A stretch of DNA of 63,826 nt, counting the filler, from Ministeria vibrans ATCC 50519 (lineage: Eukaryota; Protista; Filasterea): the NCBI GenBank assembly GCA_943704425.1. It is 7 parts of 7 records of this genome, joined end to end, with 100 filler letters (N's around TTAATTAATTAA, not from the genome) between each part and the next. Parts side by side here need not be neighbours in the genome. Positions count along the whole stretch, not along the records: positions 1 to 28,653 come from CALSCP010002066.1; 6 more parts are not named here. The stretch is one strand, 5' to 3'. Within the stretch, counting starts at the first letter, position 1. Each line of letters starts with the position of its first letter. The notes under the pieces were generated by a model. It searched no databases, was not told the origin of the DNA, and saw nothing but the letters and a program-made list of their open reading frames with translations. Shown piece after piece: positions 1,713-27,874 of the stretch. Both the position numbers and the translations under genes were made by a program.

Positions 1713-4700
1713 TCAATAGGCTCGAGAGCGCCTCACAAGGGGCTTCCCATCAGGGTCATGGGTTTGGGGTGCGGTGAGTCGCGCATAGAGTGCCTGTGAG
1801 CTGGTGTATTCCTCGAGACTGCTGACCGAGTCGGTGTGGGGCTCGCGAGGTCCATGCAGTCCAACGTCAACACAGTTTGCATAGATGTGTTGGTCCACAG
1901 TGGTATTGGCAAGGCACACTACACCCTCCTCAATGGTCACTTTGCGGTTCTGTAGCAGCCGCGCTTGATGTGCCAGCTGACAGAACGAACGGGAAAACAA
2001 AACAAAACAAAAATAAGTCTTTTCTGTTTCTTAGGGTGCTTGATACCTGTAAGAACAACACGTAGGCATGGCAGTCGTGCGTGTCGGGTTCGTCAACCTC
2101 GCAGCCGTACGCATCACGCATAGTCTGGGGTGCGACGCTAGCATCGCTCGTGTCGCTGTGGCGCCCACCACCTGCACTTCCCTTACCCTGTCGTCGCTGC
2201 ATGAAAGACTCACGGAAGCGCCCGCCACCACTGGCCAACCACCGCTCGACACCAAACACTTCGCGCTCCTGAGCCTTGTCCTTGGACGCCCCCTTGCGCG
2301 TGCTCGATGTCGTGATCACCTGGAAGGGCGACGTTTGGTCCTCGTCAAAGCCCTTGACAGCATCCGACGTGCGCATAATGTTGAACGCAAACATGCCATC
2401 TTCGCCTTCCTTGAAGCTCTCCAGCTCATTCTCATTGTAAAACTCGGACAGCACCCACTTCATGGCACGGAAGCCCATCGAGTCCATCTCGGGGTCGCGT
2501 GGCACTAGCGTGCGCTTGAGATGCGCCTTGGCTCCGGGCGAGGCTGCTGCCGCTGCTTCTGCCACGGCCGCCGCAATACGCTCGGCAGCTGTCGGCGGAC
2601 GCTGCTTCTTAAGCGCCTGCTGCTGCTGGCGCTGCTCCTGTCGTTTCCGTCGCTTCTTGTCCTTTATCGTCTTGGCATCGTCAGGTGGTCCTTCGCCCGA
2701 GTCGCGCCACGGCCGACGGTGCTTGGCCAGTAGCTTGTTCATCTTTTGGCTGCCCTTGGACGTTGTCGTTGGGTCGTCCGCCGGCTCAAACGTGTAGCCT
2801 GAGAATGATCGTCCACGCAGCGACGGCGCTGCAGCACCAGATGCTGCTACTGCTGCTGCTGCCGCCGCTGATGATGATGATGTGGTGGTGGTGGTGGTGG
2901 CGGTGGTTTCTGAAAACGAGTCACGCTGTGTGGCATCTCCTTCGCCCGTTGTTCCCTCTGGCACCTCGTCGACCGATTGTCGCAAGTACTTCTCACGACG
3001 CACCGCCACGGCAGCGGAGGCAGCGGTGACAGCGGTGGCGCCCATGAGATGGCGGTCGTCGGTGCCCGTAGGCGCAGTCCAGGCGAGTTGCAGTTGCTGA
3101 ATGCGTCGCTGCATCTCCACTGCGCGTTCTTTGGGCGACACCTGCTGTGCCTCGGCAAGTGTCTGCGCCTTCTGTTCTGCCGTCTCTCCCTTCTTGGGCA
3201 CCAGTGAGTTGACGTCGCTCAATAGATCAAGCAAGAAGACGAGATCATTGTCGGTCGCGTCCGCCCCGACATCGAGACCGCCCAGCCAGCGCACCAGACG
3301 AGGCTCGTGCTGTCGCGTCACTTCCTCGTCGGTCCCAAAGTCCACATAGCCATCATCCTTGAGCATACTGGATGCGGTCGCCACAAGACTGTCTGCGTCC
3401 CGCCCTGCACTGAGCACGTCTTGCAGGGCAAAGAGCAGTCCGTCGTCGCCTGCACCACGGTACGCAATTTCGTCGTCGTTACACTCGTTGGCTGTCTCTC
3501 GCACCACCATCGCTGGCAGCGACACCAAGGACGAACGCGACGATGACGATGAAACCGACGATACCGACGATCCACACGACCACGCAAGCTCATCGCCTTC
3601 CTCCCTTTCTACCCGCTCCTCCTCCTCCTGCTCCTCCTGCTCCTCCTGCTCCTCCTCCGACAAGTCCTCATCTTCCACTGACTCGTCCTGACCACGTCGC
3701 TCCTTGACGCGATCGCCCGTCGTCGTTCCTCTCATGCTCTTTGGATCGGTTGCTGCGGCAATGGCGCGCCTTCGTCTGCGCCCTCCCAGGGTGTCCTGGT
3801 CCTCTTCGCAGACGCCGAGTCGCGCGTGCCACCAGTGAACGTGGTTTCGACGGGGCATGCGGTAGCCGCACCAGGGCGGATGGTAGTGCAGGTAGTAGTC
3901 GGTGGAGAGATTCCACAGGGAAGTGTTGGAGTGGACGGACGGTCGGAAGACGCCAAGGAAGAGATTGATGGCGCCTTGCTTGTCGGCGTCGGTGAATGAG
4001 TTGCTGTAGTAGCGTTGAATGGTGTGCAGAATGTCGCGCGAGTTTGAGGTCCACTGAGACGTCTGACGGTATGTCTCAAGGGTGTTGACAAGCTGAGAGC
4101 CGCCGTACTGCAGGGCAATGGTGTCGCCGTGGTCCTCGTACATAGTCTTGAGCACATGAAAGGCAGCACAGTCAAACTCGACGTGGGGCCAGTCGATGAC
4201 GCCGAGCGCGTACAGTTGATGGCCCAGCGCACACTTGCCCACCATAAACTCGACCATGTTGGTGCGATCGAGACAGTCAATGCAGTTAGTGCGCAGGACG
4301 CCTAGCTGGCGACGTCCCTGCACGGAATTCTCGTCGTACGACACGCCGCCCACCTTGATTTGCATCCCTTGCTCCTCGCGCACCCGGTTCGCCGCCACCT
4401 GCTTGCCACTGTGAAAGAAGCCCGTGATGCGGATGGCATCTACGCCAATCAGCGCAAGCCGCTCCAGTACGTTGTTCTGCGGATTTTTGCTCTTGGCACA
4501 GTTGGCCATGTCCCATGCACTGTAGATCAATTGGTGGTCCGGTGGAAGGTGCTACAAAAGGGATTAATAATCATTAATAATTAATATAAAAACAAGTGCT
4601 CTAAAATTCGTTCTTCTCAAATTAATTACGCGGTTGAGATAGCGAACGCACTGGCCAAACTCGCGATGAAGAATGCTCTCGCGGGGCTTTTTCTCCTGCT

Positions 4701-6145
4701 TCTTGACGACATTGAGGACAATGATGGGTGAGCCGTAGATGCGGAAGAGTTCGTCAAAGTGGAGGGCGGCAGGGGAGTGGCAGGGGTCGACACGGTCGAC
4801 TTGGATGGGCGGCTTGGTCGCGAGACCCTTGGTGTCCTGGCTCCAGAAAAGCGGGATGCTGCCACGCATCTGCCGGAACGACGTGTAGCCGCCCGTGTCG
4901 GAGCTCAACCGTGACGCATCGTGGACAATCTGCTCGCTCTCGACGTCATTGGCCACCCAGCCGGCATCGTTGGCGCCGCGCTTAAGAAACCGCGTGCCTG
5001 CCATGCGCCGAGACCGTCGCGCAATCAGTGTCACGTAGATGGGCCGTCGAAATACTGCCAAGTTGGCCTAGAAAAAGAAAAGGTTGAGGTTCAGCCTATG
5101 GTTGATAGTGCCTCCGTTTTTCTCTCTTCTTTTTCTCTCTGCGTAAGGCCGTCCGTCTGCATGTCTCTCTCTGATGTCTCACTCTGATTCTCTCCCTTGT
5201 GTTTCTCCCTGGTGTCTTCATCTCTCTTTTTCTTTCTCTCTCCCAAAGCCGTCCGTCTGCACGTCTCTATCTCCCTATGTACTTCTCTCTCACTCCATCT
5301 TGTGTATTTACCTGGGAGACAAAACCGTGGATGATGGGAAGAATCCAGTCGCGATGGACATGGTTGATGAGGGGCTGCAGCAGGTAGTGGTTCCAGATGA
5401 ACTTGTCGTTGAAACGCGACAGGTCGACGCGTCCTGATGGCAGAGTGGCGTCCATTTCATCGCTGCGCACCATTTGGTACTGGAGACCGTGCGTGAGATC
5501 GTATGTGTGACTGTAGTAGAAGTTAGAGGTGAGGTCCACGGAGTGAAATGTTTTGAGATAGTGCGTCTCGTCGGCGGATCGTTGGACGTGTGCGCTGGGA
5601 TGAAGCACAGGCACCATGGCGGTGTCTTCAATCTTGTAAATGTAGTGGGCACCAATGAGAGCAACGCGGCGTCGTTTCGTCACGAGGATCAGGTAGTATC
5701 CCTCGAGGAAGCGCACAGCGCCCAGCAGCGCATACGCCGAGACCTTCCCAAAGATGCCCCCAAGCGAGCGGTTGCCCTCGTCGATCATCATCAGGAGGTT
5801 CCGCACTTGCTCGCGCGTGTATTCGATGCCGTCGTCGACAATGTTGAGCGCGACCGACATTCGGTCAATCTGTGAGAAGGAAAAGAGTTTTTGAGACGAA
5901 TTTTTTATTTTTGTTTTGTAAGAAGAAAAAAAGAATCACCTTGAGAACACGAAAGCGCGTCCCGTGGCTGTTGGAACCGACAATGTAGAGGCGCTACACG
6001 AGTGCGTGAGTGTGAGAGTGGCAGAGCGAGCGGGAAGAGAGGAGAGAGAAGGAATTGAGCGAGTTTGTACCATTTTGGTCTCGTAGACAGCAATGCCTTC
6101 GACCGACGGCCGAGCCGGCACCAACGACAGCGCTGGTTTGCGCAT
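1713..6145 (-). CDS. FIG4: FIG4/SAC3 PI(3,5)P2 5-phosphatase, multi-exon, with long low-complexity C-terminal region
   Basis: YETK..RFYIVGSN..RFRVLK; RRSRRMAGTRFLKRG; ANDVESEQIV; RGSIPLFWSQ; catalytic RTNCIDCLDRTN; GDTIALQYGGSQLV; RYYSNSFTDADKQ. Confidence 0.95.
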
Positions 6146-6301
6146 GAACAAAAATAATAGTAAAAAGGATAATAAAATTAAAAATTAAAAAATATAATAA
6201 TAATAATGTATTGTTTTGGGGGGGGTTTTTTTGACTCTGATCAGTGGTTATTAAGAGGGACGCCGCAATGATGCACCGGGGATTGCCGTGTACAAGCTCT
6301 A

Positions 6302-6458
6302 CCTGTGCCTTCGTACATTTTTCTCATAGGTGTATCACTCAGTATCAGTGGGTCTATGGGCTTCTTTCGGGACATTCTCGTCTTGAAGTTTACGGCGGAA
6401 GAATGTCTTGTTTTGACATTGAGTACAGCTCTCGATTCTCTATTAATTATATTCTTAG
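6302..6458 (+). mobile_element. Dispersed ~160-bp repeat, copy 1 (Helitron-like, non-autonomous)
   Basis: Near-identical to 30133-30294 and to the reverse complement of ~56150-56290 (shared GTATCAGTGGGTCTATGGGCTTC...GACATTGAGTACAGCTCTCGATTCTCT). Confidence 0.75.
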
Positions 6459-6580
6459 TGGTTAATAATTACAGTCATTGTGATTGCATTTCCTTTCTGA
6501 CTTCTGAGTAAACAAAGGTGTTGTTTTGTGGTATATTAGTACTGTAATGAAAAATTGAAAATGACTGCGGGGAATACATA

Positions 6581-9500
6581 TTAGAGATATTGTTTGTCGT
6601 CGTCGAGCCACTGGTCGGGAAACTGGGTCGCCGAGGCGCCGATACGCTGGAGAGTGATCTCGTCGATGACCTGGGCACAGTCGTCAAAGCTTGTGGCCGA
6701 CTGCCTGACGTCCGAGTTGGTGCGTCCAAAGCGACGCAACGTCGTCGGGGTAGCAACAGGTGAGAGTCCCTCGTTTTCGATGAGCGAACGGCGGGCCGAG
6801 CGGCGCGGACAAAAGTCCGCGCTGACGTTTGAGTCAGTGTCCGAATCTTGTTCCTCGTCAACCCATTCCTTGATGGCGTTCTGGGTCTTATCCATGTAGC
6901 GTTCGCGGATGCTGCTGACAAAGTCGGGGTCGACTTCATAAAAGGACTCGATGCGGCCGCGCATGATGTCGCGCAGACGCATTTGGGTGTCGCTCGAGCT
7001 GCCCTCGGTGGTGGTGCCCGAGAGAGACATACCGGAGTCGGAGTAAGCCGAGCTCGATTCTGTGCGCGACATCGTGGAAACGCTGGTTTCGCCGCGTTTG
7101 GGAGGCGCACGGAAGCCACCGCGGCGCAAGGCGTCGTTTCGCTTGTGCTTGTTGTTGGAGGAGGTGCGGGTTGAGCGAGCCTCCCACTTGCTGGCAAGTT
7201 CGGCGCGGGTGCGTCGCGAAAGCCCATACGCGAAGAAAAGCCAGAGGCCCTGGAAGCCATTGACAGCGGCAAAGAGGAGCCAGACAACGTCCGAGTCGAC
7301 CGCCAGCGCAATGTAGCTGAGCACCCAAGTGGTTCCGGTGGTCATACAGAAAATAATCATGGCACGCAAGTGTTGCCATCGCTCGGAACTGCTGTTGGAC
7401 TTGCGCAGGCGTTTGTTGGCCTTGTAGCTGCGGTAGAAGACGCGAACGCACATAAAGAGAATGGCAAAGTCAAATACGAGCACGACGCCAAGGGGCACAA
7501 GGAAGGCCCACGTGAGAACGGGGCCGGATTTGAACCAGCAAACGGAAGAGCTAGTGCTCGAGCCTTGTGTCTGGTCCACAATGGCAAGGACGGCCGTGGG
7601 CAGCAGAGGGAGCAGCCAGAGCAGCACGCAAGCAACGGTCGTGGAGCGGACCGACTCGCTGAGCTTGTTCAGAACAATGGCACGCCAGAGCAGCGCAGCA
7701 CTTGCAAACATCCACATGAAAACAGACATGACCGAGTAGTACAGGGCCAGTTTGGAGAATTGACACAGCGCTGCGTTTTGCGTCTGGTTGATGCCGGCGG
7801 AGAAAATGACATTGACGAGGATAAGCGCAACGCTAAGCTGCATCACAACGAGAATAGGAGTGGTGCGCAGACGGGGCAGGTAAGAAAAAATGAGGAGCAG
7901 TGCAGTGCAGGCAATGATGGAGATGATGCAACCCAGCAAGCTGACGACGTTGGTGGCAACTGCTAGGGGTGATGTTGACGACGTGTAGAAAACTCCAACG
8001 TCGCTAAAGTGCATCAAATCGCCGCTGATAGTGCTGAGCACGTCGTCAATCACTTGGTTGCCCGCCTTCTCCCAGTCGCTGCCTTCGGCGCGGTAGTAAA
8101 GAACACGCGAGTAGCCGGGAGATGGGCTACCCAGAGGGATGGTGATGCGCACGGCTGTGGTAAAGTCCATGGCTGGCAGGAGTGTGTAGATAATGGAGGC
8201 GCGGTACGCCGAGGGCTCCGAGCCTACAACACTTTGGGTCGCGCGACGCCCGACAATAATGTCCTCGGAGACCTCCTTGAGCGCACCGACTGGCACTGTG
8301 AGCGTCACATTGCCGCTGCTGATGCTGCCGCCCACATTACGGGCCACCGTGGCTGCTGCAAGCTCGAAGTAGGTGATTTCCGTCTCACAGAGTTCGCCCG
8401 TGAATACTCCAAGGCAACTACAAGTAAAGGCGGAGACACCATCGACGCACACTGCGCCATTCTGGCACGGCGACGAAGCGCACTCGTTAATATCAAGGGC
8501 GCAGGTGAGTCCCGTGTAGCCCAGAGCACATGTGCATGAGTGACCGCCGCCCGGCGCGGGGGACTCAACACAGGTGGCGCCGTTCTGACATGGAGACGAT
8601 ACACACACATCGGCGTCGTCGGAGCACATGGCGCCTGTCCAGCCTGCGAGACACGAACAGGTGTACAGATTGGCGCTAATATCTTGACAGGTAGCGCCAT
8701 TCTGGCAGGGTGACGACTCGCACTCGCTCGTCTCCAAGTCACACAGCAAGCCAAAGAATCCAGCGGGGCAAGAGCACGTAAAGCTGTATGCAGCATCGAG
8801 ACACGTCGCGCCGTTCTGACAGGGCATCGACGCACACTCGTCAAGGTTCACACTGCACGTTACGCCGGCAAAACCGCCCACACAGTTGCACGAGTAGCCA
8901 GCGACAGCGTCGGAGCAGGCGCCGCCGTTTTCACAAGGAGACGAATCGCACTCGTCCATATCAACGGCACAGATGGCGCTGGTGTATCCGACGGCGCAGA
9001 GGCAGAGGAAGCTGTCCTCAAGGTCGAGGCAGGTGGCACCGTTCAGGCAAGGATTAGAGGCGCACTCATTGACGGTGGGCGCAGGCAACGGGAAAGTCTC
9101 TTCGCTGGGCTTGAACAGCACGGCAAAGTTGGTGAGATGGTTGCAGCGACAGCGAGTAGAGCTGGCAGACGAGGAGAGCACCGTGCAGCCATCGGTGGAC
9201 CAGGCGTCCAAGTCGAACGACCAGTAGTAGCAGCCGCGCGGGGCAGTGCGGGAGCTGTTGGCGTGGACAAGGTCGACAATAACAGCGTCGTCGTCGGCGA
9301 GGCCGTTGACTTGGGCGTCGCCCACGACAAAGGAGACAATGGGAGAGTCGAGGACGAGGGCAGGGTCACTCTGGTTGGTGGACAGCTCGGAGAAGGGGTT
9401 TTCGGCGTAGGTGACCATCTGGACGACGATGGAACAGCTGACGAAGGCACTGAGTTTGGCGTCGGTGTCGCTAACGGCGGTGGCGAAGCCCGCCGGGAGC

Positions 9501-11186
9501 GTGACGGCCGACGTGCCAATGGCGTGGATACCTGTGGCGCTGGCGATGGTGGAGCGAGTGGAGAAGGCGCTGCTAAAGCGGTTGCCATTGGAGGTGCGGA
9601 GAGTGTTGCAGGGTTGCTGTAGGGCAGTGGATCGCACTGCGTTGACGGCAGCCGTGGCAAGGGAGCTGGTGCTGGCGACAGAGCGCAGAGCGGGAAGCGT
9701 GTCTGCGGCCAAGAGTGCGTCGACGGTGTCCAAGGCGAGAAGGGTAGCGTTAAGTGAGCTCGCGAGATCGAGGTCAGGATCGATCGGAGCGTTGGAGGGG
9801 TCAAGCAGGCTAAGAGTGTTGTTGACAAGGAAGGAATTGACCTTGTTTAGCGAGGTGAGCATGACCGCTGCAGACTGGGCGGGCGAGTCGGTGGTGGCAA
9901 AGGCGTTGTTAGTGGCGAGCGTGTCAATAATGGAGAGGGTGCCGTTAACCAGATCGCCCGCGGCGTCTTCGGCTTCAAATTCGTTGAGGTCTGTGACAAG
10001 GCAGTTGGGCATGCCATCAGCGGGGTTGTTGTTGCTCATGGTGAGATTTGGCGGGTTGACAAATGGTGTCCACGAAGCGACACCACCCGTGCACAGCTGT
10101 GGGTTGTCGACAATAGTCGCCTGGCCACCAATGGATTTGAGCGAGAGGCGCATTGCGATGGAGCGAAGTGCGAGGTTGTTGCGGATCTCGAGGTCGTCCG
10201 TGATGAAGCGCAGGCTGCTTGTGGCAATGTGTCTGAGCGCGGTATTGTTGGTGACAATGAGGGACGCCTTGATTTTTCGCAGTCCCAAGAGTTCCAGGCG
10301 CTCCAGGCTGGCGCAGTTGGTGACTTCAAGGGACGTGTCGATGTTCTTGTCGCTGGTGTACAGGCGGACGGTGGTGAGCTGCTGGAGATTGTCGATGCGC
10401 AGCTTGTCGCCGACACTCTTGGGGACAGTGTAGTCCAGGGTGCCTCCGACGACGCCTGGGTCGTCAGCAATGAGCAGTGCGGCGGCATTCTTCAGCTTGG
10501 TGAAGAGCGCGAGGAGCGGTGCTGACGTGGGCGAGACAAAAAAAACGCCCGTGAGCGTTCGCACCTTGAGCAGCTGCAAGGAGTCGATGGAGGCAAGGGA
10601 CGGGTTGGCACGAAGGTCAAGGTCGCCATTGAAGGTCGCTGCAATGCTAGAGAATGCGATGACGCTCGAGAGGACCGGATTCTGCCGGATGGCAAGAGTG
10701 CCAACTGAAGTAAGCAGAGGGAAACCGTCGAGGGTAACGAGCGCGTCGTTGTCGCTGATGTCCAGGAGCGTAGACACAGTCTCAAGTTTGGGAAAGGCGG
10801 CGACGGAAGTGGTAGGGAGCGCCGTTAAATTGCAAAGGCGAAGTGTGGTGACGTCGACAAGCTCAGGAAAAATGCCCGAAATGTCGGACAAGGATGCGAG
10901 TGAATCAAGCACCAGCGCACCCTGGATTGTGTCTACTAGTGGGAACGCATTTTCGACTTGCACCGTCGTCCACGACGAGGGCACGACGAGAGTTGCGCTG
11001 ATGGTTGTGCTACAAAATGCATATAGTGACGTCAATTGGAGCGGTCGCGCGACAAGAAGGCGTGTTCATTTGTGGATGGAACCCTTACCAAAGGGGGTTG
11101 TTCAAGGACTCAGTTGGGGTACACACAAGCGCGGAGCAAAAAGACGACGACGCGAGGAGAGTGAGAAGTGCCACAAACAAAAACAT
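6581..11186 (-). CDS. Adhesion-type GPCR: signal peptide, L-domain/LRR-like repeats, GAIN/GPS, 6 EGF repeats, ZU5-like domain (HFS), 7TM_2
   Basis: Exon 1 MFLFVALLTLLASSSFCSA.. (11186-11089), intron about 11088-11010; GPS CYYWSF..WSTDGC..CRCNHLTNFAVL; six EGF repeats; secretin-like 7TM (VVSLLGCIISII..MSVFMWM..CWF..GTTWV..NGFQGLWLFF). Confidence 0.92.
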
Positions 11187-11582
11187 TTCTTTCTCAAGAA
11201 GGAAATGGCGTTGCACTGGATGGACGCGAGCGTCGCGAGGGAGGGTGATAGTTAACAAACAACAGAGTGGTATAACAACGGACGCCGGTGCGCTTGAAAG
11301 AAAGAAAGAATTGATTGTGGATTTTTTTGGAATTTTTAAGTACGAAAGATCAGCGACAGATCCAAAACGCCATCTCAGCCATCCGAGAAAATGGCTACTG
11401 GATGAGGCATCACCGCACCAGCAAGCAATCAGTTTTTGAGTTATTATTGGTTGCCGGTTGGTGACACGAATGGCTTGTATCGACGGAGGATCATGGTGAA
11501 TCAATGACAGTGAATAATAAGTCTTCAGTCAGACGTCAGTTCAGTGAATAATAATTTTTTTCAGTGCTTCCTTCACATTTCC

Positions 11583-12489
11583 ATGAATGAGCGACCCTGT
11601 CCATTCTGCGAGATTGTAACGAATAGAAAGGACAGCAATGGACGGGGTCTTCTGTTTTTCGACGATCGCGTCATTGTGTTCTATGACATTCGCCGACGCG
11701 CTCGTCTTCACCTGCAGATTGTGCCCGTCAGCCACCGCCAGGACATCAACTCGCTGACACGCGATGATGTTGATCTTGTGAGACACATGGAGTCGGTTGG
11801 CACACAAGTTGCGCGCGTAAGGAGCGCACTTTAGCCATTTTTATTTAACGGGTTCTTTCCTTCTTCTTCTCTTCTTCTCCTCTTCTTCTTCTTCTTCTCT
11901 CTCACTCCTCCTCTCACTCACTTCTCTCACTCACTCTGTCTCTGTTTCTATCTCTCTCTCTCTCTTTCTCTCTTTGTCTATCTGTTTCTGTCTATTTGTT
12001 TGTGTGTTTGTCTCTTCTCTCTCATTTTCTCTCTCTCAGACACTTCTCAACGACTCTACCATTGAACCGCTTATGGGATTCCATGTACCGCCTTATACCA
12101 GGTGAGTCAGCTTGCGCTGTATTGTGTGTTTGAATCAACTCTCACAACACACATATTCTCTCACTCTCCATCGACCCTCTGCACACGCTCTCTTGACTCT
12201 TCTCATTCTACCCCGCTCTGACGTCCTCCCTTCTATCTCTTTATGTTTCCAATATTATAGTATATTTTATACGACGTCGTATTTATTGATACTATGTATT
12301 ACCTTTACATTCTTGTCGGTGGAGTATTCTCTACCTCTCTCGCTCACTCTTGTGCATTTTTCTCATTCAAGCGTCCATCACCTCCATCTTCATTGCATTG
12401 TGCCACCGTTCCTTTGGTTTGCAAGGCTCAAGTATCTGTCATTTGCACCGTGGTTTCGCACTGTCGAGCAAACCATCTCGCGATTGTAG
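11583..12489 (+). CDS. HIT-family nucleotide hydrolase (HINT3/aprataxin-like), 3 exons
   Basis: CPFCEI...HLQIVP..|GFHVPPYTS|VHHLHLHCI histidine triad. Confidence 0.85.
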
Positions 12490-13177: not shown

Positions 13178-16100
13178 ATGAAGTTTGCGCTTCTCGTCCT
13201 TTGTCTTTGTTGTGTCGCCGCCGTGTGCGCCCAAGGCCCACCCAATCCAAGACCTTCGGGTGCACGTCCTTCGTCGCGACCCGACCGACCTACTAGTGTA
13301 AGCGATTGGTTGAATTTTCCATTTGATTCTCACACTACTCTTTTCGCATTGTTGCCACAAAAATTTCAGCGTCCCCTGTTTACCGGCCGCCCGTCTCCAA
13401 CGGGCCCCGCCCGCCCGTCCAACGCTCCAGGTGCTACCGGCAGTGCACCCCAACCCACAAGGGTAAGCTATTTGCGTTGATTGGGCGATATCCAGCGTGT
13501 GGTTCCCACGCAACTCTGTATTTTTTTTTCCTTTCTTCTTATTTACCCCTCACCGTTCTGCTCAGCCGACCGCCGCCGCCCCTGCATGAAACGTTCTTAA
13601 CTTATGTTTTCTTGTCTTCTTTACGTGTTGTCTTGCAGCCTAGCAACGTCGAAGTGCTTGATTGGTACACTTCAAATTTTGCGGGATTCACTGGCAGTGG
13701 CTTTGCTCCAAACCCTAGCGCGGGCCAACTTTCTTCCAATGAGTGGTATGTTGATGTTGCTGCACCAACACCGACAGTGGGTCCCAATGTGAGTGCACGC
13801 CCCACTGGTACACGACCGACAGCCCGTCCCGATGCGAGTGCACGCCCCACTGGTACACGACCGACAGCCCGTCCCGATGCGAGTGCACGCCCCACTGGTA
13901 CACGACCGACAGCCCGTCCCGATGCGAGTGCACGCCCCACTGGAACCCGACCGACAGCCCGTCCCAATGCGAGTGCACGTCCCACTGGTACACGACCGAC
14001 AGCCCGTCCCAATGCGAGTGCACGCCCCACTGGAACACGACCGACAGCCCGTCCTGCTGGAGCAACTGGCGTGGGTGGTCTCGGTGGTGGTGGTCCCGGT
14101 GGTGGTGGTCCCGGTGGTGGTGGTCCCGGGGGTGGTGGCCCAGGTGGCGGAATTGGTCGCCGTGATGTCGGTGTCTATGGGGGCGAGCAAACCTCTGCCG
14201 AGTTTGCTGGCGGCGTTGTGTCTGAATTACCGACTACGCCCGCCGTGTACGCTCTTAACTCAACACGCGGCATTGCGCTGGTATGCAACCAATAACTTCC
14301 CTATCATTTTCTTATCAATATTCTTGCTCTTATACATAACCTAGGGTGTGTTTGCAACTCAAGCCTTTTTCAACCCCGGCTTTTTTGAGCTACAGCTTCC
14401 AGCTCAGCCACTGAGCACAAACGATGTGCTACGAGTGCGCACTGAGTTTGTATCGCTCGGCAATCCCTCAATTGGATGGGCGCTCTCCGCGTACACGGGA
14501 GCTCTCGATAGCCCTGACGCCACCCCCTTTGTCACTCTCGACCGGTTCTCTCCGCCACAACAACAGCAAAGGCCTCCAACTCAGTGGCAATACTCTCTTC
14601 GTACTGCTCATCTCAATGTCACGGCAGGTAAAACATCAGAATGAACAACCAACCAAAATGACAGACCTTCGTTTGCAGATATGGTCTCGTCTGCGCGCAT
14701 CTTCTTGCGCTTCACAACGCGCGGAGGTCCGCCCAACACGCCTTTCTCATCGGGTCTGGTTGGCATCAACAGTGTCCAAGTTCAGATTGTATCGCCCTTG
14801 TCGACTTCCAGTGTCAGTGTGGCTCCCAGTGCGACTCCCAGTGTGGCTCCCACTGCGACTTCCTCCTCTAGCTCTGTCGCTTTGTGTGCGTCTATGCCCT
14901 GCCTCCATGGCGCCACATGCAACGAAATGCTGGACTCATACACCTGCACGTGTGCCCTTGGCTTCAGTGGCGACCACTGCTCTGTTAATGTGGACGAGTG
15001 CTCAAGTGAGCCATGTCAAAACGGTGGAACCTGTACCGACACCGTCAATGGTTTCACTTGTACGTGCGTCTTGGGTTTCACCGACAGCATCTGCCAGACT
15101 AACATTGACGACTGCGCTGCTCAGCCCTGCCTTAATGGTGCTTCGTGTACCGACTCCGTCAACGGCTACTCGTGCGCGTGCGCCTCAGGCTTTACTGGCA
15201 CCCTGTGCGACCAGGACGTACTCGAGTGCGCCTCCGCTCCGTGCCAGAATGGTGGCACGTGTACGGACGGCGTAAACAGCTACACTTGCACGTGCGCTGC
15301 GGGATACACGGACGCCTCATGTGCAACAAACATCAACGAGTGTGCCTCCACTCCGTGCCAGAATGGTGCCACATGTACGGACGGCGTAAACAGCTACACT
15401 TGCACTTGCGCTGCGGGGTTTTTTGGCACCTTTTGCGACACAGCCACTGACGAATGTGCGTCGTCTCCGTGCCAGAACAACGGCGTGTGCTCCGATACGG
15501 TTGCTGGCTACACCTGTACTTGCGTCACTGGCTTCAACGGTGCCCTGTGCCAGACCAACATCAACGAGTGCGCCTCCACCCCGTGTGAGAATGGTGCCAC
15601 GTGTACGGACGGCGTGAACGGCTACACTTGCACGTGCGCTGCGGGATACATGGGCGCCTTATGTGCAACGAACATCAACGAGTGCGCCTCCACCCCGTGC
15701 GAGAATGGTGCCACATGTACGGATGGCGTGAACGGCTACACTTGCACGTGCGCTGCGGGATACATGGGCGCCTCATGTGCAACGAACATCAACGAGTGTG
15801 CGTCAAGTCCGTGTCAGAACGGCGGCGTGTGCACGGATGGAACGAACAGTTTCTCGTGTGCGTGTGTCACCGGGTGGTTTGGCGACGTGTGCGACACGGA
15901 TGTCAACGAGTGCGCGTCGAACCCATGTGGCAATGGGGCGACGTGTGCGGATTCGACGAACGGGTATGCGTGCCAGTGTGCGGCTGGATACGAAGGGCCA
16001 CACTGTCTCACTGAGACGGACGAGTGCGCGTCGAGCCCATGCATGAATGCAGGTGTGTGCGTTGACCAGTTGGCGGGTTTTAGTTGTACTTGTGTGACTG

Positions 16101-17434
16101 GGTACGAAGGCGCTACGTGTGCGATGAACAGCAACGAGTGCGCGTCCAATCCGTGTACCAATGGCGGCGTGTGTAATGACGCTATCAACGGCTACTCTTG
16201 TACGTGTGCCTCTGGTTTCACGGGTGTTCTGTGCGACCTGGATCTCGACGAGTGCGTCTCGTTCCCGTGTGCCAACGGTGCTTCGTGCGTGAACAAAGCG
16301 AATGGCTTCTCTTGCTCGTGTTCTGCGGGCTTTTTTGGAGCGTTGTGCGAATCGGAGACGAACGAGTGTGCGTCGAATCCCTGCTTGAACGGTGCGTCTT
16401 GTACTGATTTAGTCAATGGCTTTTCCTGTTTGTGTTCGGCCGGCTACACAGGCAGTTTGTGCACTGTGAACGAAAACGAGTGTGCATCGAACCCTTGCCT
16501 CAACGGCGGTGTCTGCACCGACCATGTCAACAGTTTCTTTTGCGCCTGTCCAAGCGGCTTTACCGGGACGACCTGCGCGGACGATGTCGACGAGTGCACG
16601 TCCAACCCGTGCTCAGGCGCGACCTCATTCTGCTCCAATAACATCGGCTCGTACAGCTGCTCTCCTCCCCTCGAGGGTGCAGTTCTTGCTCAGTCACTTG
16701 TACCCACAACTGGTGCGACGATCACCTCGTCGAATGTGAAGGTTGTCGTTCCTGCTGGAGCACTGACAGCTGGTACAACCATTACACTGGCGCAATTTCC
16801 CGCAACGTACCAGCCTAATGTTGCGCCTGCGACGACGTCAGGTGCTGCCGGATTCTTCTACGAGCTTGCTCCCTCCATTTCTTCGTTCAACGGCAAGCAA
16901 GTGCGGGTAACAGTCACCATCCCAAATTTTGACGCCTCCAAGACGTATGTGCTGTACTATCGTGCGAGCGGTGGAGCATGGACAGAGGCGTCCAGTCAAG
17001 TCGTCGATGCGACACTGCACACCGTTTCGGGTGGCCTTCTGCACTTCAGCACAGTTGGTGTCTACACAGCCACTCAGCCAGCGACGGGCAACCAGAACAA
17101 CAGTGGCGCATCCTCCAACACAATCCTGATCGTTGTCCTTGCCGTGGTGGCGTCCGCTCTTGTATGCCTCGTCGTCATTGCCGCCATCCTCTACACACGT
17201 CGGCGTCGCCAAGCGCACCTGTGGACCAACAGCAGCGCCAAGCCCACTGCCACCTCCACGTCGCTCTTTGCCGACACCAGTGCGGCTGGCCAAGAGCAAC
17301 AGATGGGCTCGCACGATTCGTTTACCAATCCGATCTTTGCTGATAGCACCGACAATCTGCCCCGCGCCGTTCCCGAGAAACGCACTCCCATGGATGCCTT
17401 TTACATCGACAATGGCGATGAATTTGTTGCCTAG
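13178..17434 (+). CDS. Single-pass Notch-like EGF-repeat surface protein with juxtamembrane ZU5-like (HFS) domain
   Basis: Signal peptide MKFALLVLCLCCVAAVCA; several short exons; 15 complete + 1 partial EGF repeat in exon ~14680-17434; ZU5-like ..VVPAGAL..YELAP..GGLLHFSTVGV; TM ILIVVLAVVASALVCLVVIAAILY then RRRR; tail with FTNPIF. Confidence 0.9.
13792..14150 (+). repeat. Coding tandem repeats: ~6 x 45 bp (SARPTGTRPTARP[D/N]A) then (GGGGP)x4
   Basis: Visible unit gagtgcacgccccactggtacacgaccgacagcccgtccc..; in frame within an exon of the EGF protein. Confidence 0.9.
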
Positions 17435-17591: not shown

Positions 17592-21402
<3,811 letters not shown>

Positions 21403-24883: not shown

Positions 24884-27874
24884 ATGAAAGTCTATGGACT
24901 CTGCTACGTCCCCGTTCACGCCGTCACCCCTGTGGTTGTTCAGTACGTGCCCGTCTACCACCCCGTGCCCCTCCGAAGTGTCTCGGTGAACGGTAAGATC
25001 CCATTTTTTTTATTCTCAACTTACCCCTTTCACTTTCCTCCTCTCATCTTGCTCCTCCTGCCAGCGCAAATGGTCGACGTCTGCGCCGAAGTCACAGTCA
25101 AGCAAGTCTACGTCAACAGCGAACCCACACCCATTGAGGCACAGTAAGAAGACAAAAAAAGAAGACAAAAAAACAAAAAAACAAAAAAAAGTCGCACTGC
25201 ACTCCTCTCTCTGTCCCTAACGCCTCTCCCTCCGTCTCCTGCTGCTAGATATGTCTTCCCACTTGACGAACGCGCGGCGGTCTGCGCGTTCAGCTGCGAC
25301 GTGGACGGGCGTCAGATTGTGGGTGAGGTGAAGGAGAAGGACGAGGCGACGCGCGAGTACAATGCGGCTGTGCAGCAGGGCCACGGCGCGGCGCTTCTCA
25401 CGCAGGAGAAGGAGGACGTCTTCAAGGCCAAGATTGGCAACATTCTGTCGGGCTCGGTCGTGACTGTGTCCATCACGTATGTGGTCGAACTTAAGACGGA
25501 GGGTGACGCTGTGCGTTTCTTGCTGCCCACTACTGTCGCGCCGCGCTACACACCGCCCGGCACGGCACCCACCGCACAGCCACCTACTGCGTCGTTTGCT
25601 GCGAGCGCCGCTTATGCGCTTGATATTAAGCTCGAGTGCTCCATGATGTCGGCGATCCAATCGATTGTTTCGCCCTCTCACGGCCATGTCATGGTCGCGA
25701 CTGTCGAGGGCCAGACGGCCACGGCACAGCTGCTGAATGCCGTGGACATGGACAAGGATCTGGTGGTGCTGGTGACGCCCGAGAAGCCCTTGGTGCTGCA
25801 AGCGTGCCTCGAGCACGACGCGCCCTCAGGCTCCCACGCCGCCATGCTCACCATCTGCCCACAGTTTGAGCTCGTCGACAAGCGAGGCGAGTACGTCTTT
25901 GTGGTGGACCGCAGTGGCTCGATGCGTGGTGCCCAGATGACAAAGGCATGTGCCGCCCTGCAGCTCTTTCTGCGTTCACTGCCCGCCGACTGCTACTTCA
26001 ACATTGTCGGATTTGGCTCGCGCATGGAAATGTACGAGCGCTCGTCGGTGCGCTACAACGCCCACTCGCTCGCCAGTGCCACCAAACACATCAACGGAAT
26101 CACCGCCAACCTGGGCGGCACCGAACTGCTCAACCCACTACGCACCGTAATGGACCGTCCTGCCATTCCCGGCTACGCCCGGCAGGTCTTTGTGCTCACC
26201 GACGGACAGGTGTCCAACACCGAGGCGGTCGTGTCCTACGTGCGCTCGCAGGACCGCCACGCGCGTGTCTTTGCTCTGGGCATTGGCTCGGCCGTCTCGC
26301 GTGCTCTCGTTGAAGGCATTGCGCGTGCCGGCAATGGTACTGCCAAGTTTGCCGTCGAGAGCACTCGTCTCGAGGGTCTTGTCGTGCCTCAGCTGAAGCA
26401 AGCCATGCAGCCCGCCATCCGCGACGTCAAAGTCGACTGGGGCACTAGCCTTGCGGCCGCCTCGGCGTCTCAGCCGCCTGTCTACACCGAAAAGGCCCCC
26501 GAGCCTGAGCCTAGCCAGCCACCCAAGGTCAAGTCTCTCCTGGGCTACCGCAGCCCCAATGCGACTGCCACCATGACTTCCGCTACATCCACCGCCACTC
26601 CCGCCAGTCGTGCCCTTGTCAAGCAGTCGCCGCACTCCCTTCCACCCGTCTTCAATGGCGAGCGCTTCCAGGTCTACTGCATCTTCGAGCCGGGCCAGTC
26701 GCTGCCCAAGAGCGTCAGCATTACTGCACAGACACCTGACGGGCCCCTTGAGGCAACTGCCGACATCACCGAGGAGACGACTGTCGAGGGTCTTCTCATC
26801 CACCGCATGGCCGCGCGTGCTCTTCTGCGCGACCTCGACAACGGTACCAGTCCCCTTCATGCCGGCCTCGGCTTTGGCTCACATCCATCGCTCGCCGAAA
26901 TCAAGCGCGAAATGGTTACGCTGAGCAAGCGCTACAACCTTGCGAGCACCCATGCCGCCTTTGTCGCAGTCGACGTGCGCTCTCTCGGCGAACGTCTTCA
27001 GTGCGGCGGCTGGACTCCTCATGTCGACGTGCCCGCCATGGCACCTCAGCAACAACAACAGCAATTCCGCAGCCGTGGCGGTCCCATGCTTGCTGCGCCT
27101 ATGATGATGCAGGCAGGATTCGGAGGTGGCGGTGGCGGCGGCTACGCTCGCAACTGTGCGGCGCCCATGATGAAGGCCAAGATGAAGAAGGGCGCCGGTC
27201 CACCACCGCCCATGGCTCCCGGTGGACCCGGGGCCCAGGTGGCCATGAGACGCTCGGCTGCCGCTCCTGCCGCTCCTGCCATGAACTCTGCGGCCTCCGC
27301 GCCTACCGCTGACATGCTCTGTGACAGCTTTGGTTTTGTTGACGATTCAATGGACAACTCGAGTCTGTGCAGCAGCGACGACGACGAGGACGACGACTGG
27401 GAGGAGAAGACAGAAAAACTCGAGCTGAACTCAGCGTCGCTCCTGTCCGTCAAGACCGACAAGAAGCACATCAACAAGGAGAGTAGCAGCAGCAGCAGAC
27501 GTAAGGAAGGTGGTGGTGCGGAGAAGAAGAACTCCAAGAGTGTGTCGCCGCTTGAGACAATGGACCTCATTGTGAGCACTCAGGACGTCGATGGCTCAGT
27601 GGGTCTCACGGCGGCCCTTGTCGCGTCGGTCAGTGCACAGCTGAGTCAAGACGCAGTTATGACCGCCTGCAGCGCCTATCCGTCGAGCACAGGCAGCGTT
27701 GACACGCGTACCATTGCCGGCACTGCCCTGGCCATTGCGTTCCTGCGCGCCCGTCTTGCAGACCACAAGGACGAGTGGGAGCTCATGGTCGACAAGTCCC
27801 TTGACTTCCTTCGTGCTGCTGTGGGCGCTTCACACGTCGATGCCCTTCTTGCTGCTGTCGCTGCGCTTCTCTAG
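24884..27874 (+). CDS. VIT + vWA domain protein (VWA5A-like)
   Basis: VKQVYVN..PIEAQ|YVFPLDERAAVCAF; VVDRSGSM MIDAS; LGGTEL; VLTDG; VFALGIG. Confidence 0.9.

Follow-up and report, generated by a model that had tools for sequence, protein, structure and literature searches.

We identified a gene for a G-protein-coupled receptor (GPCR) of the adhesion type in the genome of the filasterean protist Ministeria vibrans ATCC 50519 (assembly GCA_943704425.1) whose product, on balance, probably has two self-cleavage modules, homologous to each other and arranged in series. The one farther from the membrane is a GAIN domain with an HL/T GPCR proteolysis site (GPS); the second, a small ZU5-fold domain with an HF/S site, lies directly outside the first transmembrane helix (TM1), and both are candidate latches. 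The stretch of DNA analysed, hereafter the window, is 63,826 nt long, filler included, and joins seven parts of the assembly. The receptor gene is located at 6584-11186 on the minus strand, within the part that comes from record CALSCP010002066.1 (positions 1 to 28,653).

The gene consists of two exons, which together give 1508 codons and a protein of 1508 aa. The open frame on the DNA runs through 1484 codons (6581-11035, minus strand) without a stop or frameshift. Residue numbers are counted from position 11035, and 24 must be added to obtain the number in the spliced protein. All searches used exon-2 reference sequences, and the joining of the exons was checked by reading-phase arithmetic: exon 1 gives 98 nt and exon 2 opens with the third base of a codon, so the exon phases fit. 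The features of the gene are listed below.

11089..11186, minus strand: coding part of exon 1, with the ATG at 11186, a hydrophobic signal peptide of 32 codons and a last 2 nt that belong to a split codon (frame and phase arithmetic).
11010..11088, minus strand: intron of 79 nt, GTAAGG...TTGTAG (transcript contigs and phase arithmetic).
6584..11009, minus strand: coding part of exon 2, 4426 nt, with the stop codon at 6581-6583 (open frame and RNA contig of run X1).
9989..11009, minus strand: Receptor-L-domain/leucine-rich repeat (LRR)-like N-terminal region (Pfam Recep_L_domain, E 2e-7; weak LRR matches).
9101..9988, minus strand: complete GAIN domain, helical and beta parts (phmmer against ADGRL3 GAIN structures, E ~1e-9).
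9116..9232, minus strand: GPS motif with its Cys and Trp residues, C-x-C-N-H-L/T-N-F-A-V-L (Pfam GPS, E 6e-13; H-L-T codons at 9131-9139).
8378..9088, minus strand: six EGF-like repeats between the GPS and the ZU5-like domain (Pfam EGF, six stretches, E 1e-40).
7970..8386, minus strand: ZU5-fold juxtamembrane domain, all-beta, without cysteines (paralogue alignment, profile match to ankyrin ZU5 at E 1e-6, AlphaFold2, Foldseek and VIA-align).
8003..8011, minus strand: H-F-S motif, predicted self-cleavage site between Phe and Ser (kept in 14 of 14 paralogues; Phe superimposed on the GAIN P1 residue).
7955..8005, minus strand: post-cleavage strand S-D-V-G-V-F-Y and stalk to TM1, candidate tethered agonist (spacing; no indels from HFS to TM1 in five ZU5 receptors).
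7244..7954, minus strand: seven-transmembrane (7TM) core, 7tm_2, Secretin/Adhesion family (Pfam 7tm_2, E 5e-25).
6584..7243, minus strand: Ser/Arg-rich cytoplasmic tail, in which Pfam recognised no domain.

The initial annotation of the window had described an intact GPS about 390 residues from TM1, followed by six EGF repeats and a ZU5-like domain, with an HFS motif at 8003-8011 some 18 residues before TM1. This architecture is confirmed, at those coordinates of the minus strand. The Pfam GPS match spans residues 602-640, with C-N-H-L-T at residues 631-635 (9131-9145); the six Pfam EGF matches occupy residues ~650-886, HFS is found at residues 1009-1011, and the 7tm_2 match covers residues 1029-1264, so that the core starts at residue 1028/1029 (position 7954). 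The GPS Thr is ~394 residues from TM1 and the HFS Ser ~17-18 residues. The GPS, described as retained, belongs to a complete module: when the 300 residues up to and including the GPS were searched with phmmer, they matched the GAIN structures of ADGRL3, ADGRE5, ADGRB and ADGRG (best E 9e-10), with query residues 90-296 aligned to residues 606-828 of 6vhh, and the distal module is therefore a complete GAIN rather than a stray motif. The receptor has the 7tm_2 core and the GPS-bearing GAIN ectodomain of the adhesion GPCRs (class B2). It lacks a GAIN/GPS directly before TM1, as 1161 nt (~390 residues) separate the end of the GPS from the start of 7tm_2.

Transcription was assessed with contigs from four public runs mapped to 6300-11600; these are assembled contigs, in which rare isoforms could be hidden. 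A single joint was found, in contigs of all four runs, which connects 11089 to 11009, skips 11010-11088 and reads GT..AG on the coding strand. A 79 nt GT..AG joint identifies the contigs as spliced RNA. One contig of 4603 nt, from run X1, covers 6548-11009 without gap or mismatch and continues into exon 1 up to 11206, and one contig of run X5 spans 6638-9438, covering the 7TM core, ZU5-like domain, EGF repeats and GPS. These four elements share one continuous transcript stretch. The initial annotation had supposed a single continuous exon and recognized that splicing out of the EGF-ZU5 segment would overturn its reading; contigs of two runs are unbroken from the GPS to the 7TM core, the sole joint is the 5' intron, and the EGF-ZU5 segment is not spliced out of the mapped transcript contigs.

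The membrane-proximal domain is ~135 aa in length. As a single sequence, it matched structures of the Protein Data Bank only at E ~1 (phmmer), and AlphaFold2 (AF2) without an alignment gave a predicted local distance difference test score (pLDDT) of 45. The only Pfam match of the single sequence, Htt_N-HEAT (E 0.0015), fell below the cut-off and was treated as chance. In a protein-atlas feature search, used as a lead only, the ZU5 cluster was the nearest of the named clusters (0.87). A six-frame search of the organism's own genome (29.7 Mb) recovered paralogous copies of the domain in long open frames, and local iteration yielded 15 copies. The alignment of 14 paralogous copies (A1) has a mean column identity of 40%, the copies diverging down to 23-49%, and just five columns are invariant: a Pro, a Trp, and the H, F and S of the motif. 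The A1 profile matched both ZU5 domains of ankyrin-2 (4d8o) at E 1e-6, and Pfam ZU5 was matched by two of the 14 members (E 2e-4). An exhaustive HMMER search of 1.8 billion representatives returned eight weak matches only, several of which resemble prokaryotic surface-type proteins, although the library does not give source organisms. In those matches the aligned domain closes with H-F-S or H-L-S, after which comes a hydrophobic strand, and two of them pass the Pfam ZU5 gathering score.

The AF2 model built from A1 is all-beta, with a pLDDT of 92.7 and a pTM of 0.86. Its top Foldseek matches were the ZU5 domains of ankyrin-R/B/G, UNC5b and ZO-1 (TM-score 0.66-0.75; 0.71-0.75 for the ankyrin ZU5 domains). 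VIA-align gave a Z of 14.7 against ankyrin ZU5 (root-mean-square deviation 2.4 over 126 residues) and of 7-10 against GAIN subdomain B of CD97, BAI3, latrophilin, GPR56, GPR97 and Gpr126. ZU5, GPS and Nup98 have been handled as one autopeptidase superfamily (PMC3482391), and it is well supported by the profiles and the model that the domain is a ZU5-fold member of this superfamily, nearer to ZU5 than to GAIN-B. It combines the beta-sandwich fold and sequence-profile relationship of ZU5 with a feature of the autoproteolytic ZU5 domains (PIDD1, UNC5CL, FIIND), namely that the cleavage position in the last hairpin is occupied by an H/S-F-S triad. The initial annotation had left the choice between a ZU5 domain and a degenerate GAIN to profile searches and structure prediction; the ankyrin-2 profile match, the confident model and the higher Z all fall on the side of ZU5. 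A degenerate GAIN was rejected, as the domain has no helical subdomain A, no GPS Cys/Trp pattern and, in the window copy, no Cys at all, and only subdomain B was matched. An SEA domain was likewise rejected: the model is all-beta, neither Pfam nor the fold searches gave an SEA match, and the motif differs. Standard Pfam annotation misses the domain, so the architecture is easily overlooked in surveys.

The position of the HF/S motif in the model was compared with that of GPS cleavage sites in solved structures. Five cleaved GAIN N-terminal chains end at the P1 residue (4dlq at 837, 5kvm at 382, 7qu8 at 249, 6v55 at 827 and 8vti at 854), and we take L837/T838 and L382/T383 to be the cleavage sites of latrophilin-1 and GPR56. 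In all five, the structural alignment to the model stops at model residue 127, the Phe of HFS, whereas uncleaved or whole-chain structures align further, to model residues 137-139. The structural equivalence of HF/S to the GAIN HL/T is well supported by these model-based alignments, because those of all five P1-ending chains stop at the HFS Phe. H-F-S is kept in all 14 aligned paralogues, and most of 13 further copies read H-[FL]-[ST]. S-F-S is found in two of the latter, where T-S-F-S replaces H-F-S (C1507:14556-14948, L068; C1072:7874-8200, L072), and a further member (C232:1717-2109, L062) carries H-L-T, the GAIN-type triad. S-F-S is the cleavage motif of the ZU5-like FIIND of NLRP1/CARD8 (PMC3210808).

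A direct precedent for cleavage at HFS outside the cell is provided by MAIN domains, extracellular GAIN-B-like domains of bacteria and archaea that are cut between the F and S of HFS, as determined by Edman degradation; a Ser-to-Ala substitution abolishes cleavage, Ser-to-Thr rescues it, and the fragments co-purify (bioRxiv 10.64898/2026.05.12.724683). The nearest relatives of our domain outside the genome are proteins of the HFS/HLS-ending, apparently prokaryotic surface kind. Taken together, the invariant triad, the MAIN precedent and these outside relatives make self-cleavage at HF/S in the window receptor likely, by analogy.

The domain had been presented as a special feature of this receptor. 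It is present there, but among the other family members examined almost all have it in front of one TM helix, and eight of these carry a tyrosine-kinase domain. The family profile placed the ZU5-like domain at no fewer than 29 sites in the genome. Of the initial 15 copies, five precede a 7tm_2 core, namely the window gene and paralogues on contigs C2584, C1103 and C572 (two); in the other ten, the domain leads into a linker rich in Gly and Ser, then one TM helix and an Arg-rich stop-transfer. Eight of the single-pass genes combine extracellular EGF repeats with an intracellular tyrosine-kinase domain. All but one of the further copies readable to the domain end are directly juxtamembrane; in the exception, again L062 on C232, the ZU5-like domain is separated from the TM helix by an EGF repeat. 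Because the same domain precedes single TM helices and occurs in receptor tyrosine kinases (RTKs), conservation of HFS alone is no argument for a tethered agonist. The occurrence of the same HFS domain and hydrophobic strand in the single-pass and kinase copies suggests that the primary role of the domain is probably that of a general juxtamembrane self-cleavage or release module. Such a role must fit kinase receptors too, and the readiest candidate is a latch that cleaves itself and joins the ectodomain non-covalently to the membrane stub, as proposed for SEA and MAIN.

A second gene of this family is found in the window itself, at 14645-17431 on the plus strand. It encodes ~15 EGF repeats, an HFS domain (ZU5-like part at 16667-17083), one TM helix and an Arg-rich stop-transfer, and there is no kinase domain in its open frame. 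The ZU5 tree puts its domain on the single-pass/RTK side, outside the adhesion GPCR branch and without a resolved placement there, although no other non-adhesion-GPCR copy has a shorter path to the domain of the window receptor.

A search for other combinations of ZU5 and 7tm_2, as the initial annotation had suggested, was successful: four paralogues on other contigs of the same genome have this architecture. The genome contains ~50 7tm_2 loci. The canonical arrangement holds at 44 of these, with 30-143 nt from the end of the Pfam GPS match to the 7tm_2 match. A distance of 726-1662 nt occurs solely in those ZU5 receptors, four in number, in which a GPS is detectable. The fifth ZU5-7TM receptor (C1103:25030-28885, L012) has 21 EGF repeats and no GPS on its contig, where the open frame runs off the contig end. 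Across the ZU5 receptors, the number of EGF repeats between GPS and ZU5 ranges from ~2 to ~13. In a 7TM tree of 39 paralogues, the five ZU5 receptors and the canonical C2221 form one clade (100/100), and in the ZU5 tree the domains of the five receptors lie on one side of a branch (91/99). The two trees fit a history in which an EGF-ZU5 cassette was inserted once between GAIN and 7TM, with duplication afterwards. The repetition of the GPS-EGFn-ZU5-7TM order in the four paralogues and the retention of HFS in every aligned copy indicate that the architecture is more than chance.

Among the canonical GPS-7TM paralogues, four (L030, L033, L043 and L046, on C1494, C335, C2306 and C2169) have H-T-T or H-A-T instead of H-L-T, and three others (L040, L051 and L052) lack one cysteine of the C-x-C. 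Judged by their motifs, these seven receptors may be cleavage-deficient.

We propose the following mechanism for the two-module receptor. The ZU5-like domain would cut itself between Phe and Ser through a His-assisted N-to-O acyl shift, as in the PIDD1 ZU5, Nup98, GAIN and MAIN. The two pieces would remain held together by their shared beta-sheet until a pull on the ectodomain detached it, and the receptor would then consist of three pieces held by two latches. In receptors of the 7TM clade, the N-terminus created by the cut, consisting of the strand and a stalk of fixed length, would sit at the place of the Stachel and may act as one; this is the least certain step.

Several observations count against this proposal. 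Cleavage at HF/S is a prediction for this protein and for all of its paralogues, and the RNA support consists of assembled contigs, in which rare isoforms stay hidden. A 146-residue piece containing the domain gave no ZU5 match in a Pfam scan on its own, and among solved folds those nearest to it are ZU5 domains that do not cleave. Ankyrin, UNC5A-D and ZO-1 have the best-studied ZU5 domains of eukaryotes, and these are not known to cleave themselves. Furthermore, an H-x-S/T motif is insufficient for cleavage: BAI2 carries HLS and is uncleaved, since other residues position the His (PMC13062082). Two further points concern the Stachel step. The strand pattern S-x-V-x-V/A-F/Y is also present in single-pass and RTK copies, and is therefore explained by the ZU5 fold alone, of which it is the last strand; and the T-x-F-A-V-L-M consensus is absent, P3' being Val/Leu and not Phe.

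The best-surviving alternative extends the two-module model and takes up the inference of the initial annotation: a GAIN-independent tethered agonist, in which removal of the ectodomain by pulling would let the S-D-V-G-V-F-Y strand into the 7TM pocket and the GPS is a second shedding site only. The strand does lie at the Stachel position, as that annotation had claimed. The conserved TM1 motif (S/T-W/Y/L-I/L/V-G/S) lies 25 residues from the HFS Ser in all five ZU5 receptors, without indels, and 25, 26 and 28 residues from the GPS site in the three canonical GPS-7TM paralogues of the same genome that were counted. This stalk is invariant in length among receptors that are 38-48% identical, whereas the linkers of the single-pass copies are Gly/Ser-rich, of low complexity and seemingly variable in length. 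Positions P3', P6' and P7' are hydrophobic or aromatic, and P7' is Tyr in four of the five 7TM copies versus one of nine single-pass copies. The clade also descends from canonical GAIN-7TM receptors and keeps the Cys-Trp of extracellular loop 2 and the Trp of TM6. Set against this are the strand pattern, which the RTK copies have as well and which the ZU5 fold demands, the missing Stachel consensus and the relatedness of the five receptors, which form one clade and are not independent observations. We regard a ZU5-derived Stachel as a tentative possibility, based on spacing and sequence pattern. A fuller scenario appears somewhat more doubtful still, in which the clade would have swapped its GAIN-derived Stachel for a ZU5/MAIN-type one, so that HF/S and not the GPS creates the agonist, with the displaced GAIN acting as a second, more distal mechanical fuse of a mechanoreceptor in three pieces with two latches, and the RTKs likewise being two-piece, force-releasable receptors.

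It is unlikely, in our judgement, that the ZU5-like domain does not cleave at all and serves as a rigid spacer or as a module that binds a ligand or co-receptor, with HFS in a structural role, like the ZU5 domains of ankyrin, UNC5 and ZO-1. Such non-cleaving domains are the top structural matches, and the motif alone is no guarantee of cleavage (PMC13062082). The T-S-F-S of two members indicates that the His is dispensable in at least some copies, but S-F-S is itself the FIIND cleavage motif of NLRP1/CARD8 (PMC3210808). H, F and S also make up three of the five invariant columns at 40% mean identity, which would be unusual for a purely structural turn, and the nearest outside relatives end in HFS/HLS, domains of that kind being cleaved at HF/S. 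Finally, an artefact, whether an assembly error, a wrong gene model or routine removal of the EGF-ZU5 segment by splicing, which would bring the GPS up against the 7TM core, is highly improbable in view of the transcript contigs of two runs that are continuous from GPS to 7TM with the 79 nt 5' intron as their only joint, the four paralogues on other contigs that repeat the architecture with 2-13 EGF repeats, and the 1484 codons free of stops and frameshifts.

Like canonical adhesion GPCRs, the window receptor has a 7tm_2 core, a large adhesive ectodomain and a complete GAIN with an HL/T GPS, and it has an H-x-S/T site ~17-25 residues before TM1 that is followed by a hydrophobic beta-strand. 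Unlike in those receptors, the GAIN/GPS lies ~394 residues away and the TM1-adjacent site belongs to a 135 aa ZU5 domain without subdomain A or the GPS Cys/Trp. The SEA- and GAIN-containing receptors ADGRF1, ADGRF5 and ADGRG6 similarly combine two extracellular cleavage-prone modules in one adhesion GPCR. However, the SEA domain is alpha/beta, has a G/SVVV motif and is distal, with the GAIN proximal, whereas in the window receptor the two modules come in the opposite order and are both members of the ZU5/GAIN superfamily.

The domain itself resembles the MAIN domains (Brogan & Rudner 2026) and the bacterial surface ZU5 autopeptidases (Zhang et al. 2012), which are small extracellular beta-sandwiches without a helical subdomain and have HFS in the last hairpin, just outside the surface anchor; the likeness is to their description and not to the sequence of Bacillus subtilis YfkN. 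Those domains anchor enzymes, toxins and adhesins to the wall or membrane, uncoupled from signalling, whereas in this eukaryote the domain is fused to a 7TM core or TM-kinase. PIDD1, UNC5CL and the FIIND of NLRP1-CARD8 share the ZU5 fold and HF/S or SF/S self-cleavage in the last hairpin, PIDD1 with two sites in series, but these are cytoplasmic death or inflammasome adaptors, and the window domain is extracellular and juxtamembrane. The RTK and single-pass paralogues are comparable to SEA single-pass receptors (MUC1, dystroglycan-like) in having a juxtamembrane self-cleaving domain and a non-covalent two-piece organization, likenesses that are predicted for the paralogues, although the fold and catalytic motif of SEA are different.

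We found no publication that describes an extracellular domain of the ZU5/MAIN type joined to a 7TM core or RTK. Literature on ZU5 with adhesion GPCRs or Capsaspora yielded mentions in reference lists only, and the word ZU5 is absent from the text of a recent eLife survey of GPCRs in unicellular relatives of animals. Word-indexed protein searches with residues 880-1040 and 1015-1290 gave no matches. A library search with profile A2 found one crinoid GPS-7tm_2 receptor only, without ZU5, and a metagenome scan with the same profile matched 142 patterns, none of which was confirmed. The exhaustive search of 1.8 billion representatives contained no eukaryotic ZU5-7TM protein; the organism's own proteins are apparently absent from these libraries, so the blank result does not prove the architecture unique.

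Adhesion GPCRs are generally considered to require, for their activation, a GAIN seated immediately on the 7TM core, and here EGF repeats and a minimal ZU5-type domain are inserted between the two. The receptor thereby tests which parts of the GAIN are needed for cleavage, fragment association and agonism. Were a ZU5-derived Stachel to prove true, tethered-agonist activation would need neither the GAIN helical subdomain nor the GPS disulfides. Signalling at the eukaryotic cell surface would offer a counterpart to the bacterial MAIN domains and the cytoplasmic ZU5 autopeptidases, and it is possible that a set of RTKs in this protist are non-covalent two-piece receptors.

As well as the two ZU5-containing genes, the window contains an intron-split gene for a SacI-homology (Syja_N) phosphoinositide phosphatase at 4564-5860 on the minus strand and, at 25301-27874 on the plus strand, a gene encoding a VIT-VWA protein that is inter-alpha-trypsin-inhibitor-like. 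The stretches 18001-19000 and 20001-21000 show a strong plus-strand purine skew, with a GC skew of 0.39-0.48 and an AT skew of 0.41-0.45, and the GC content of the first is low at 0.38; the open frames in both gave no Pfam match. Just 3' of the receptor gene, ~40 nt (6404-6444) are touched by many transcript contigs from several runs that then continue into unrelated sequence, and this segment probably represents a short element of the 3' untranslated region that is repeated or of low complexity.

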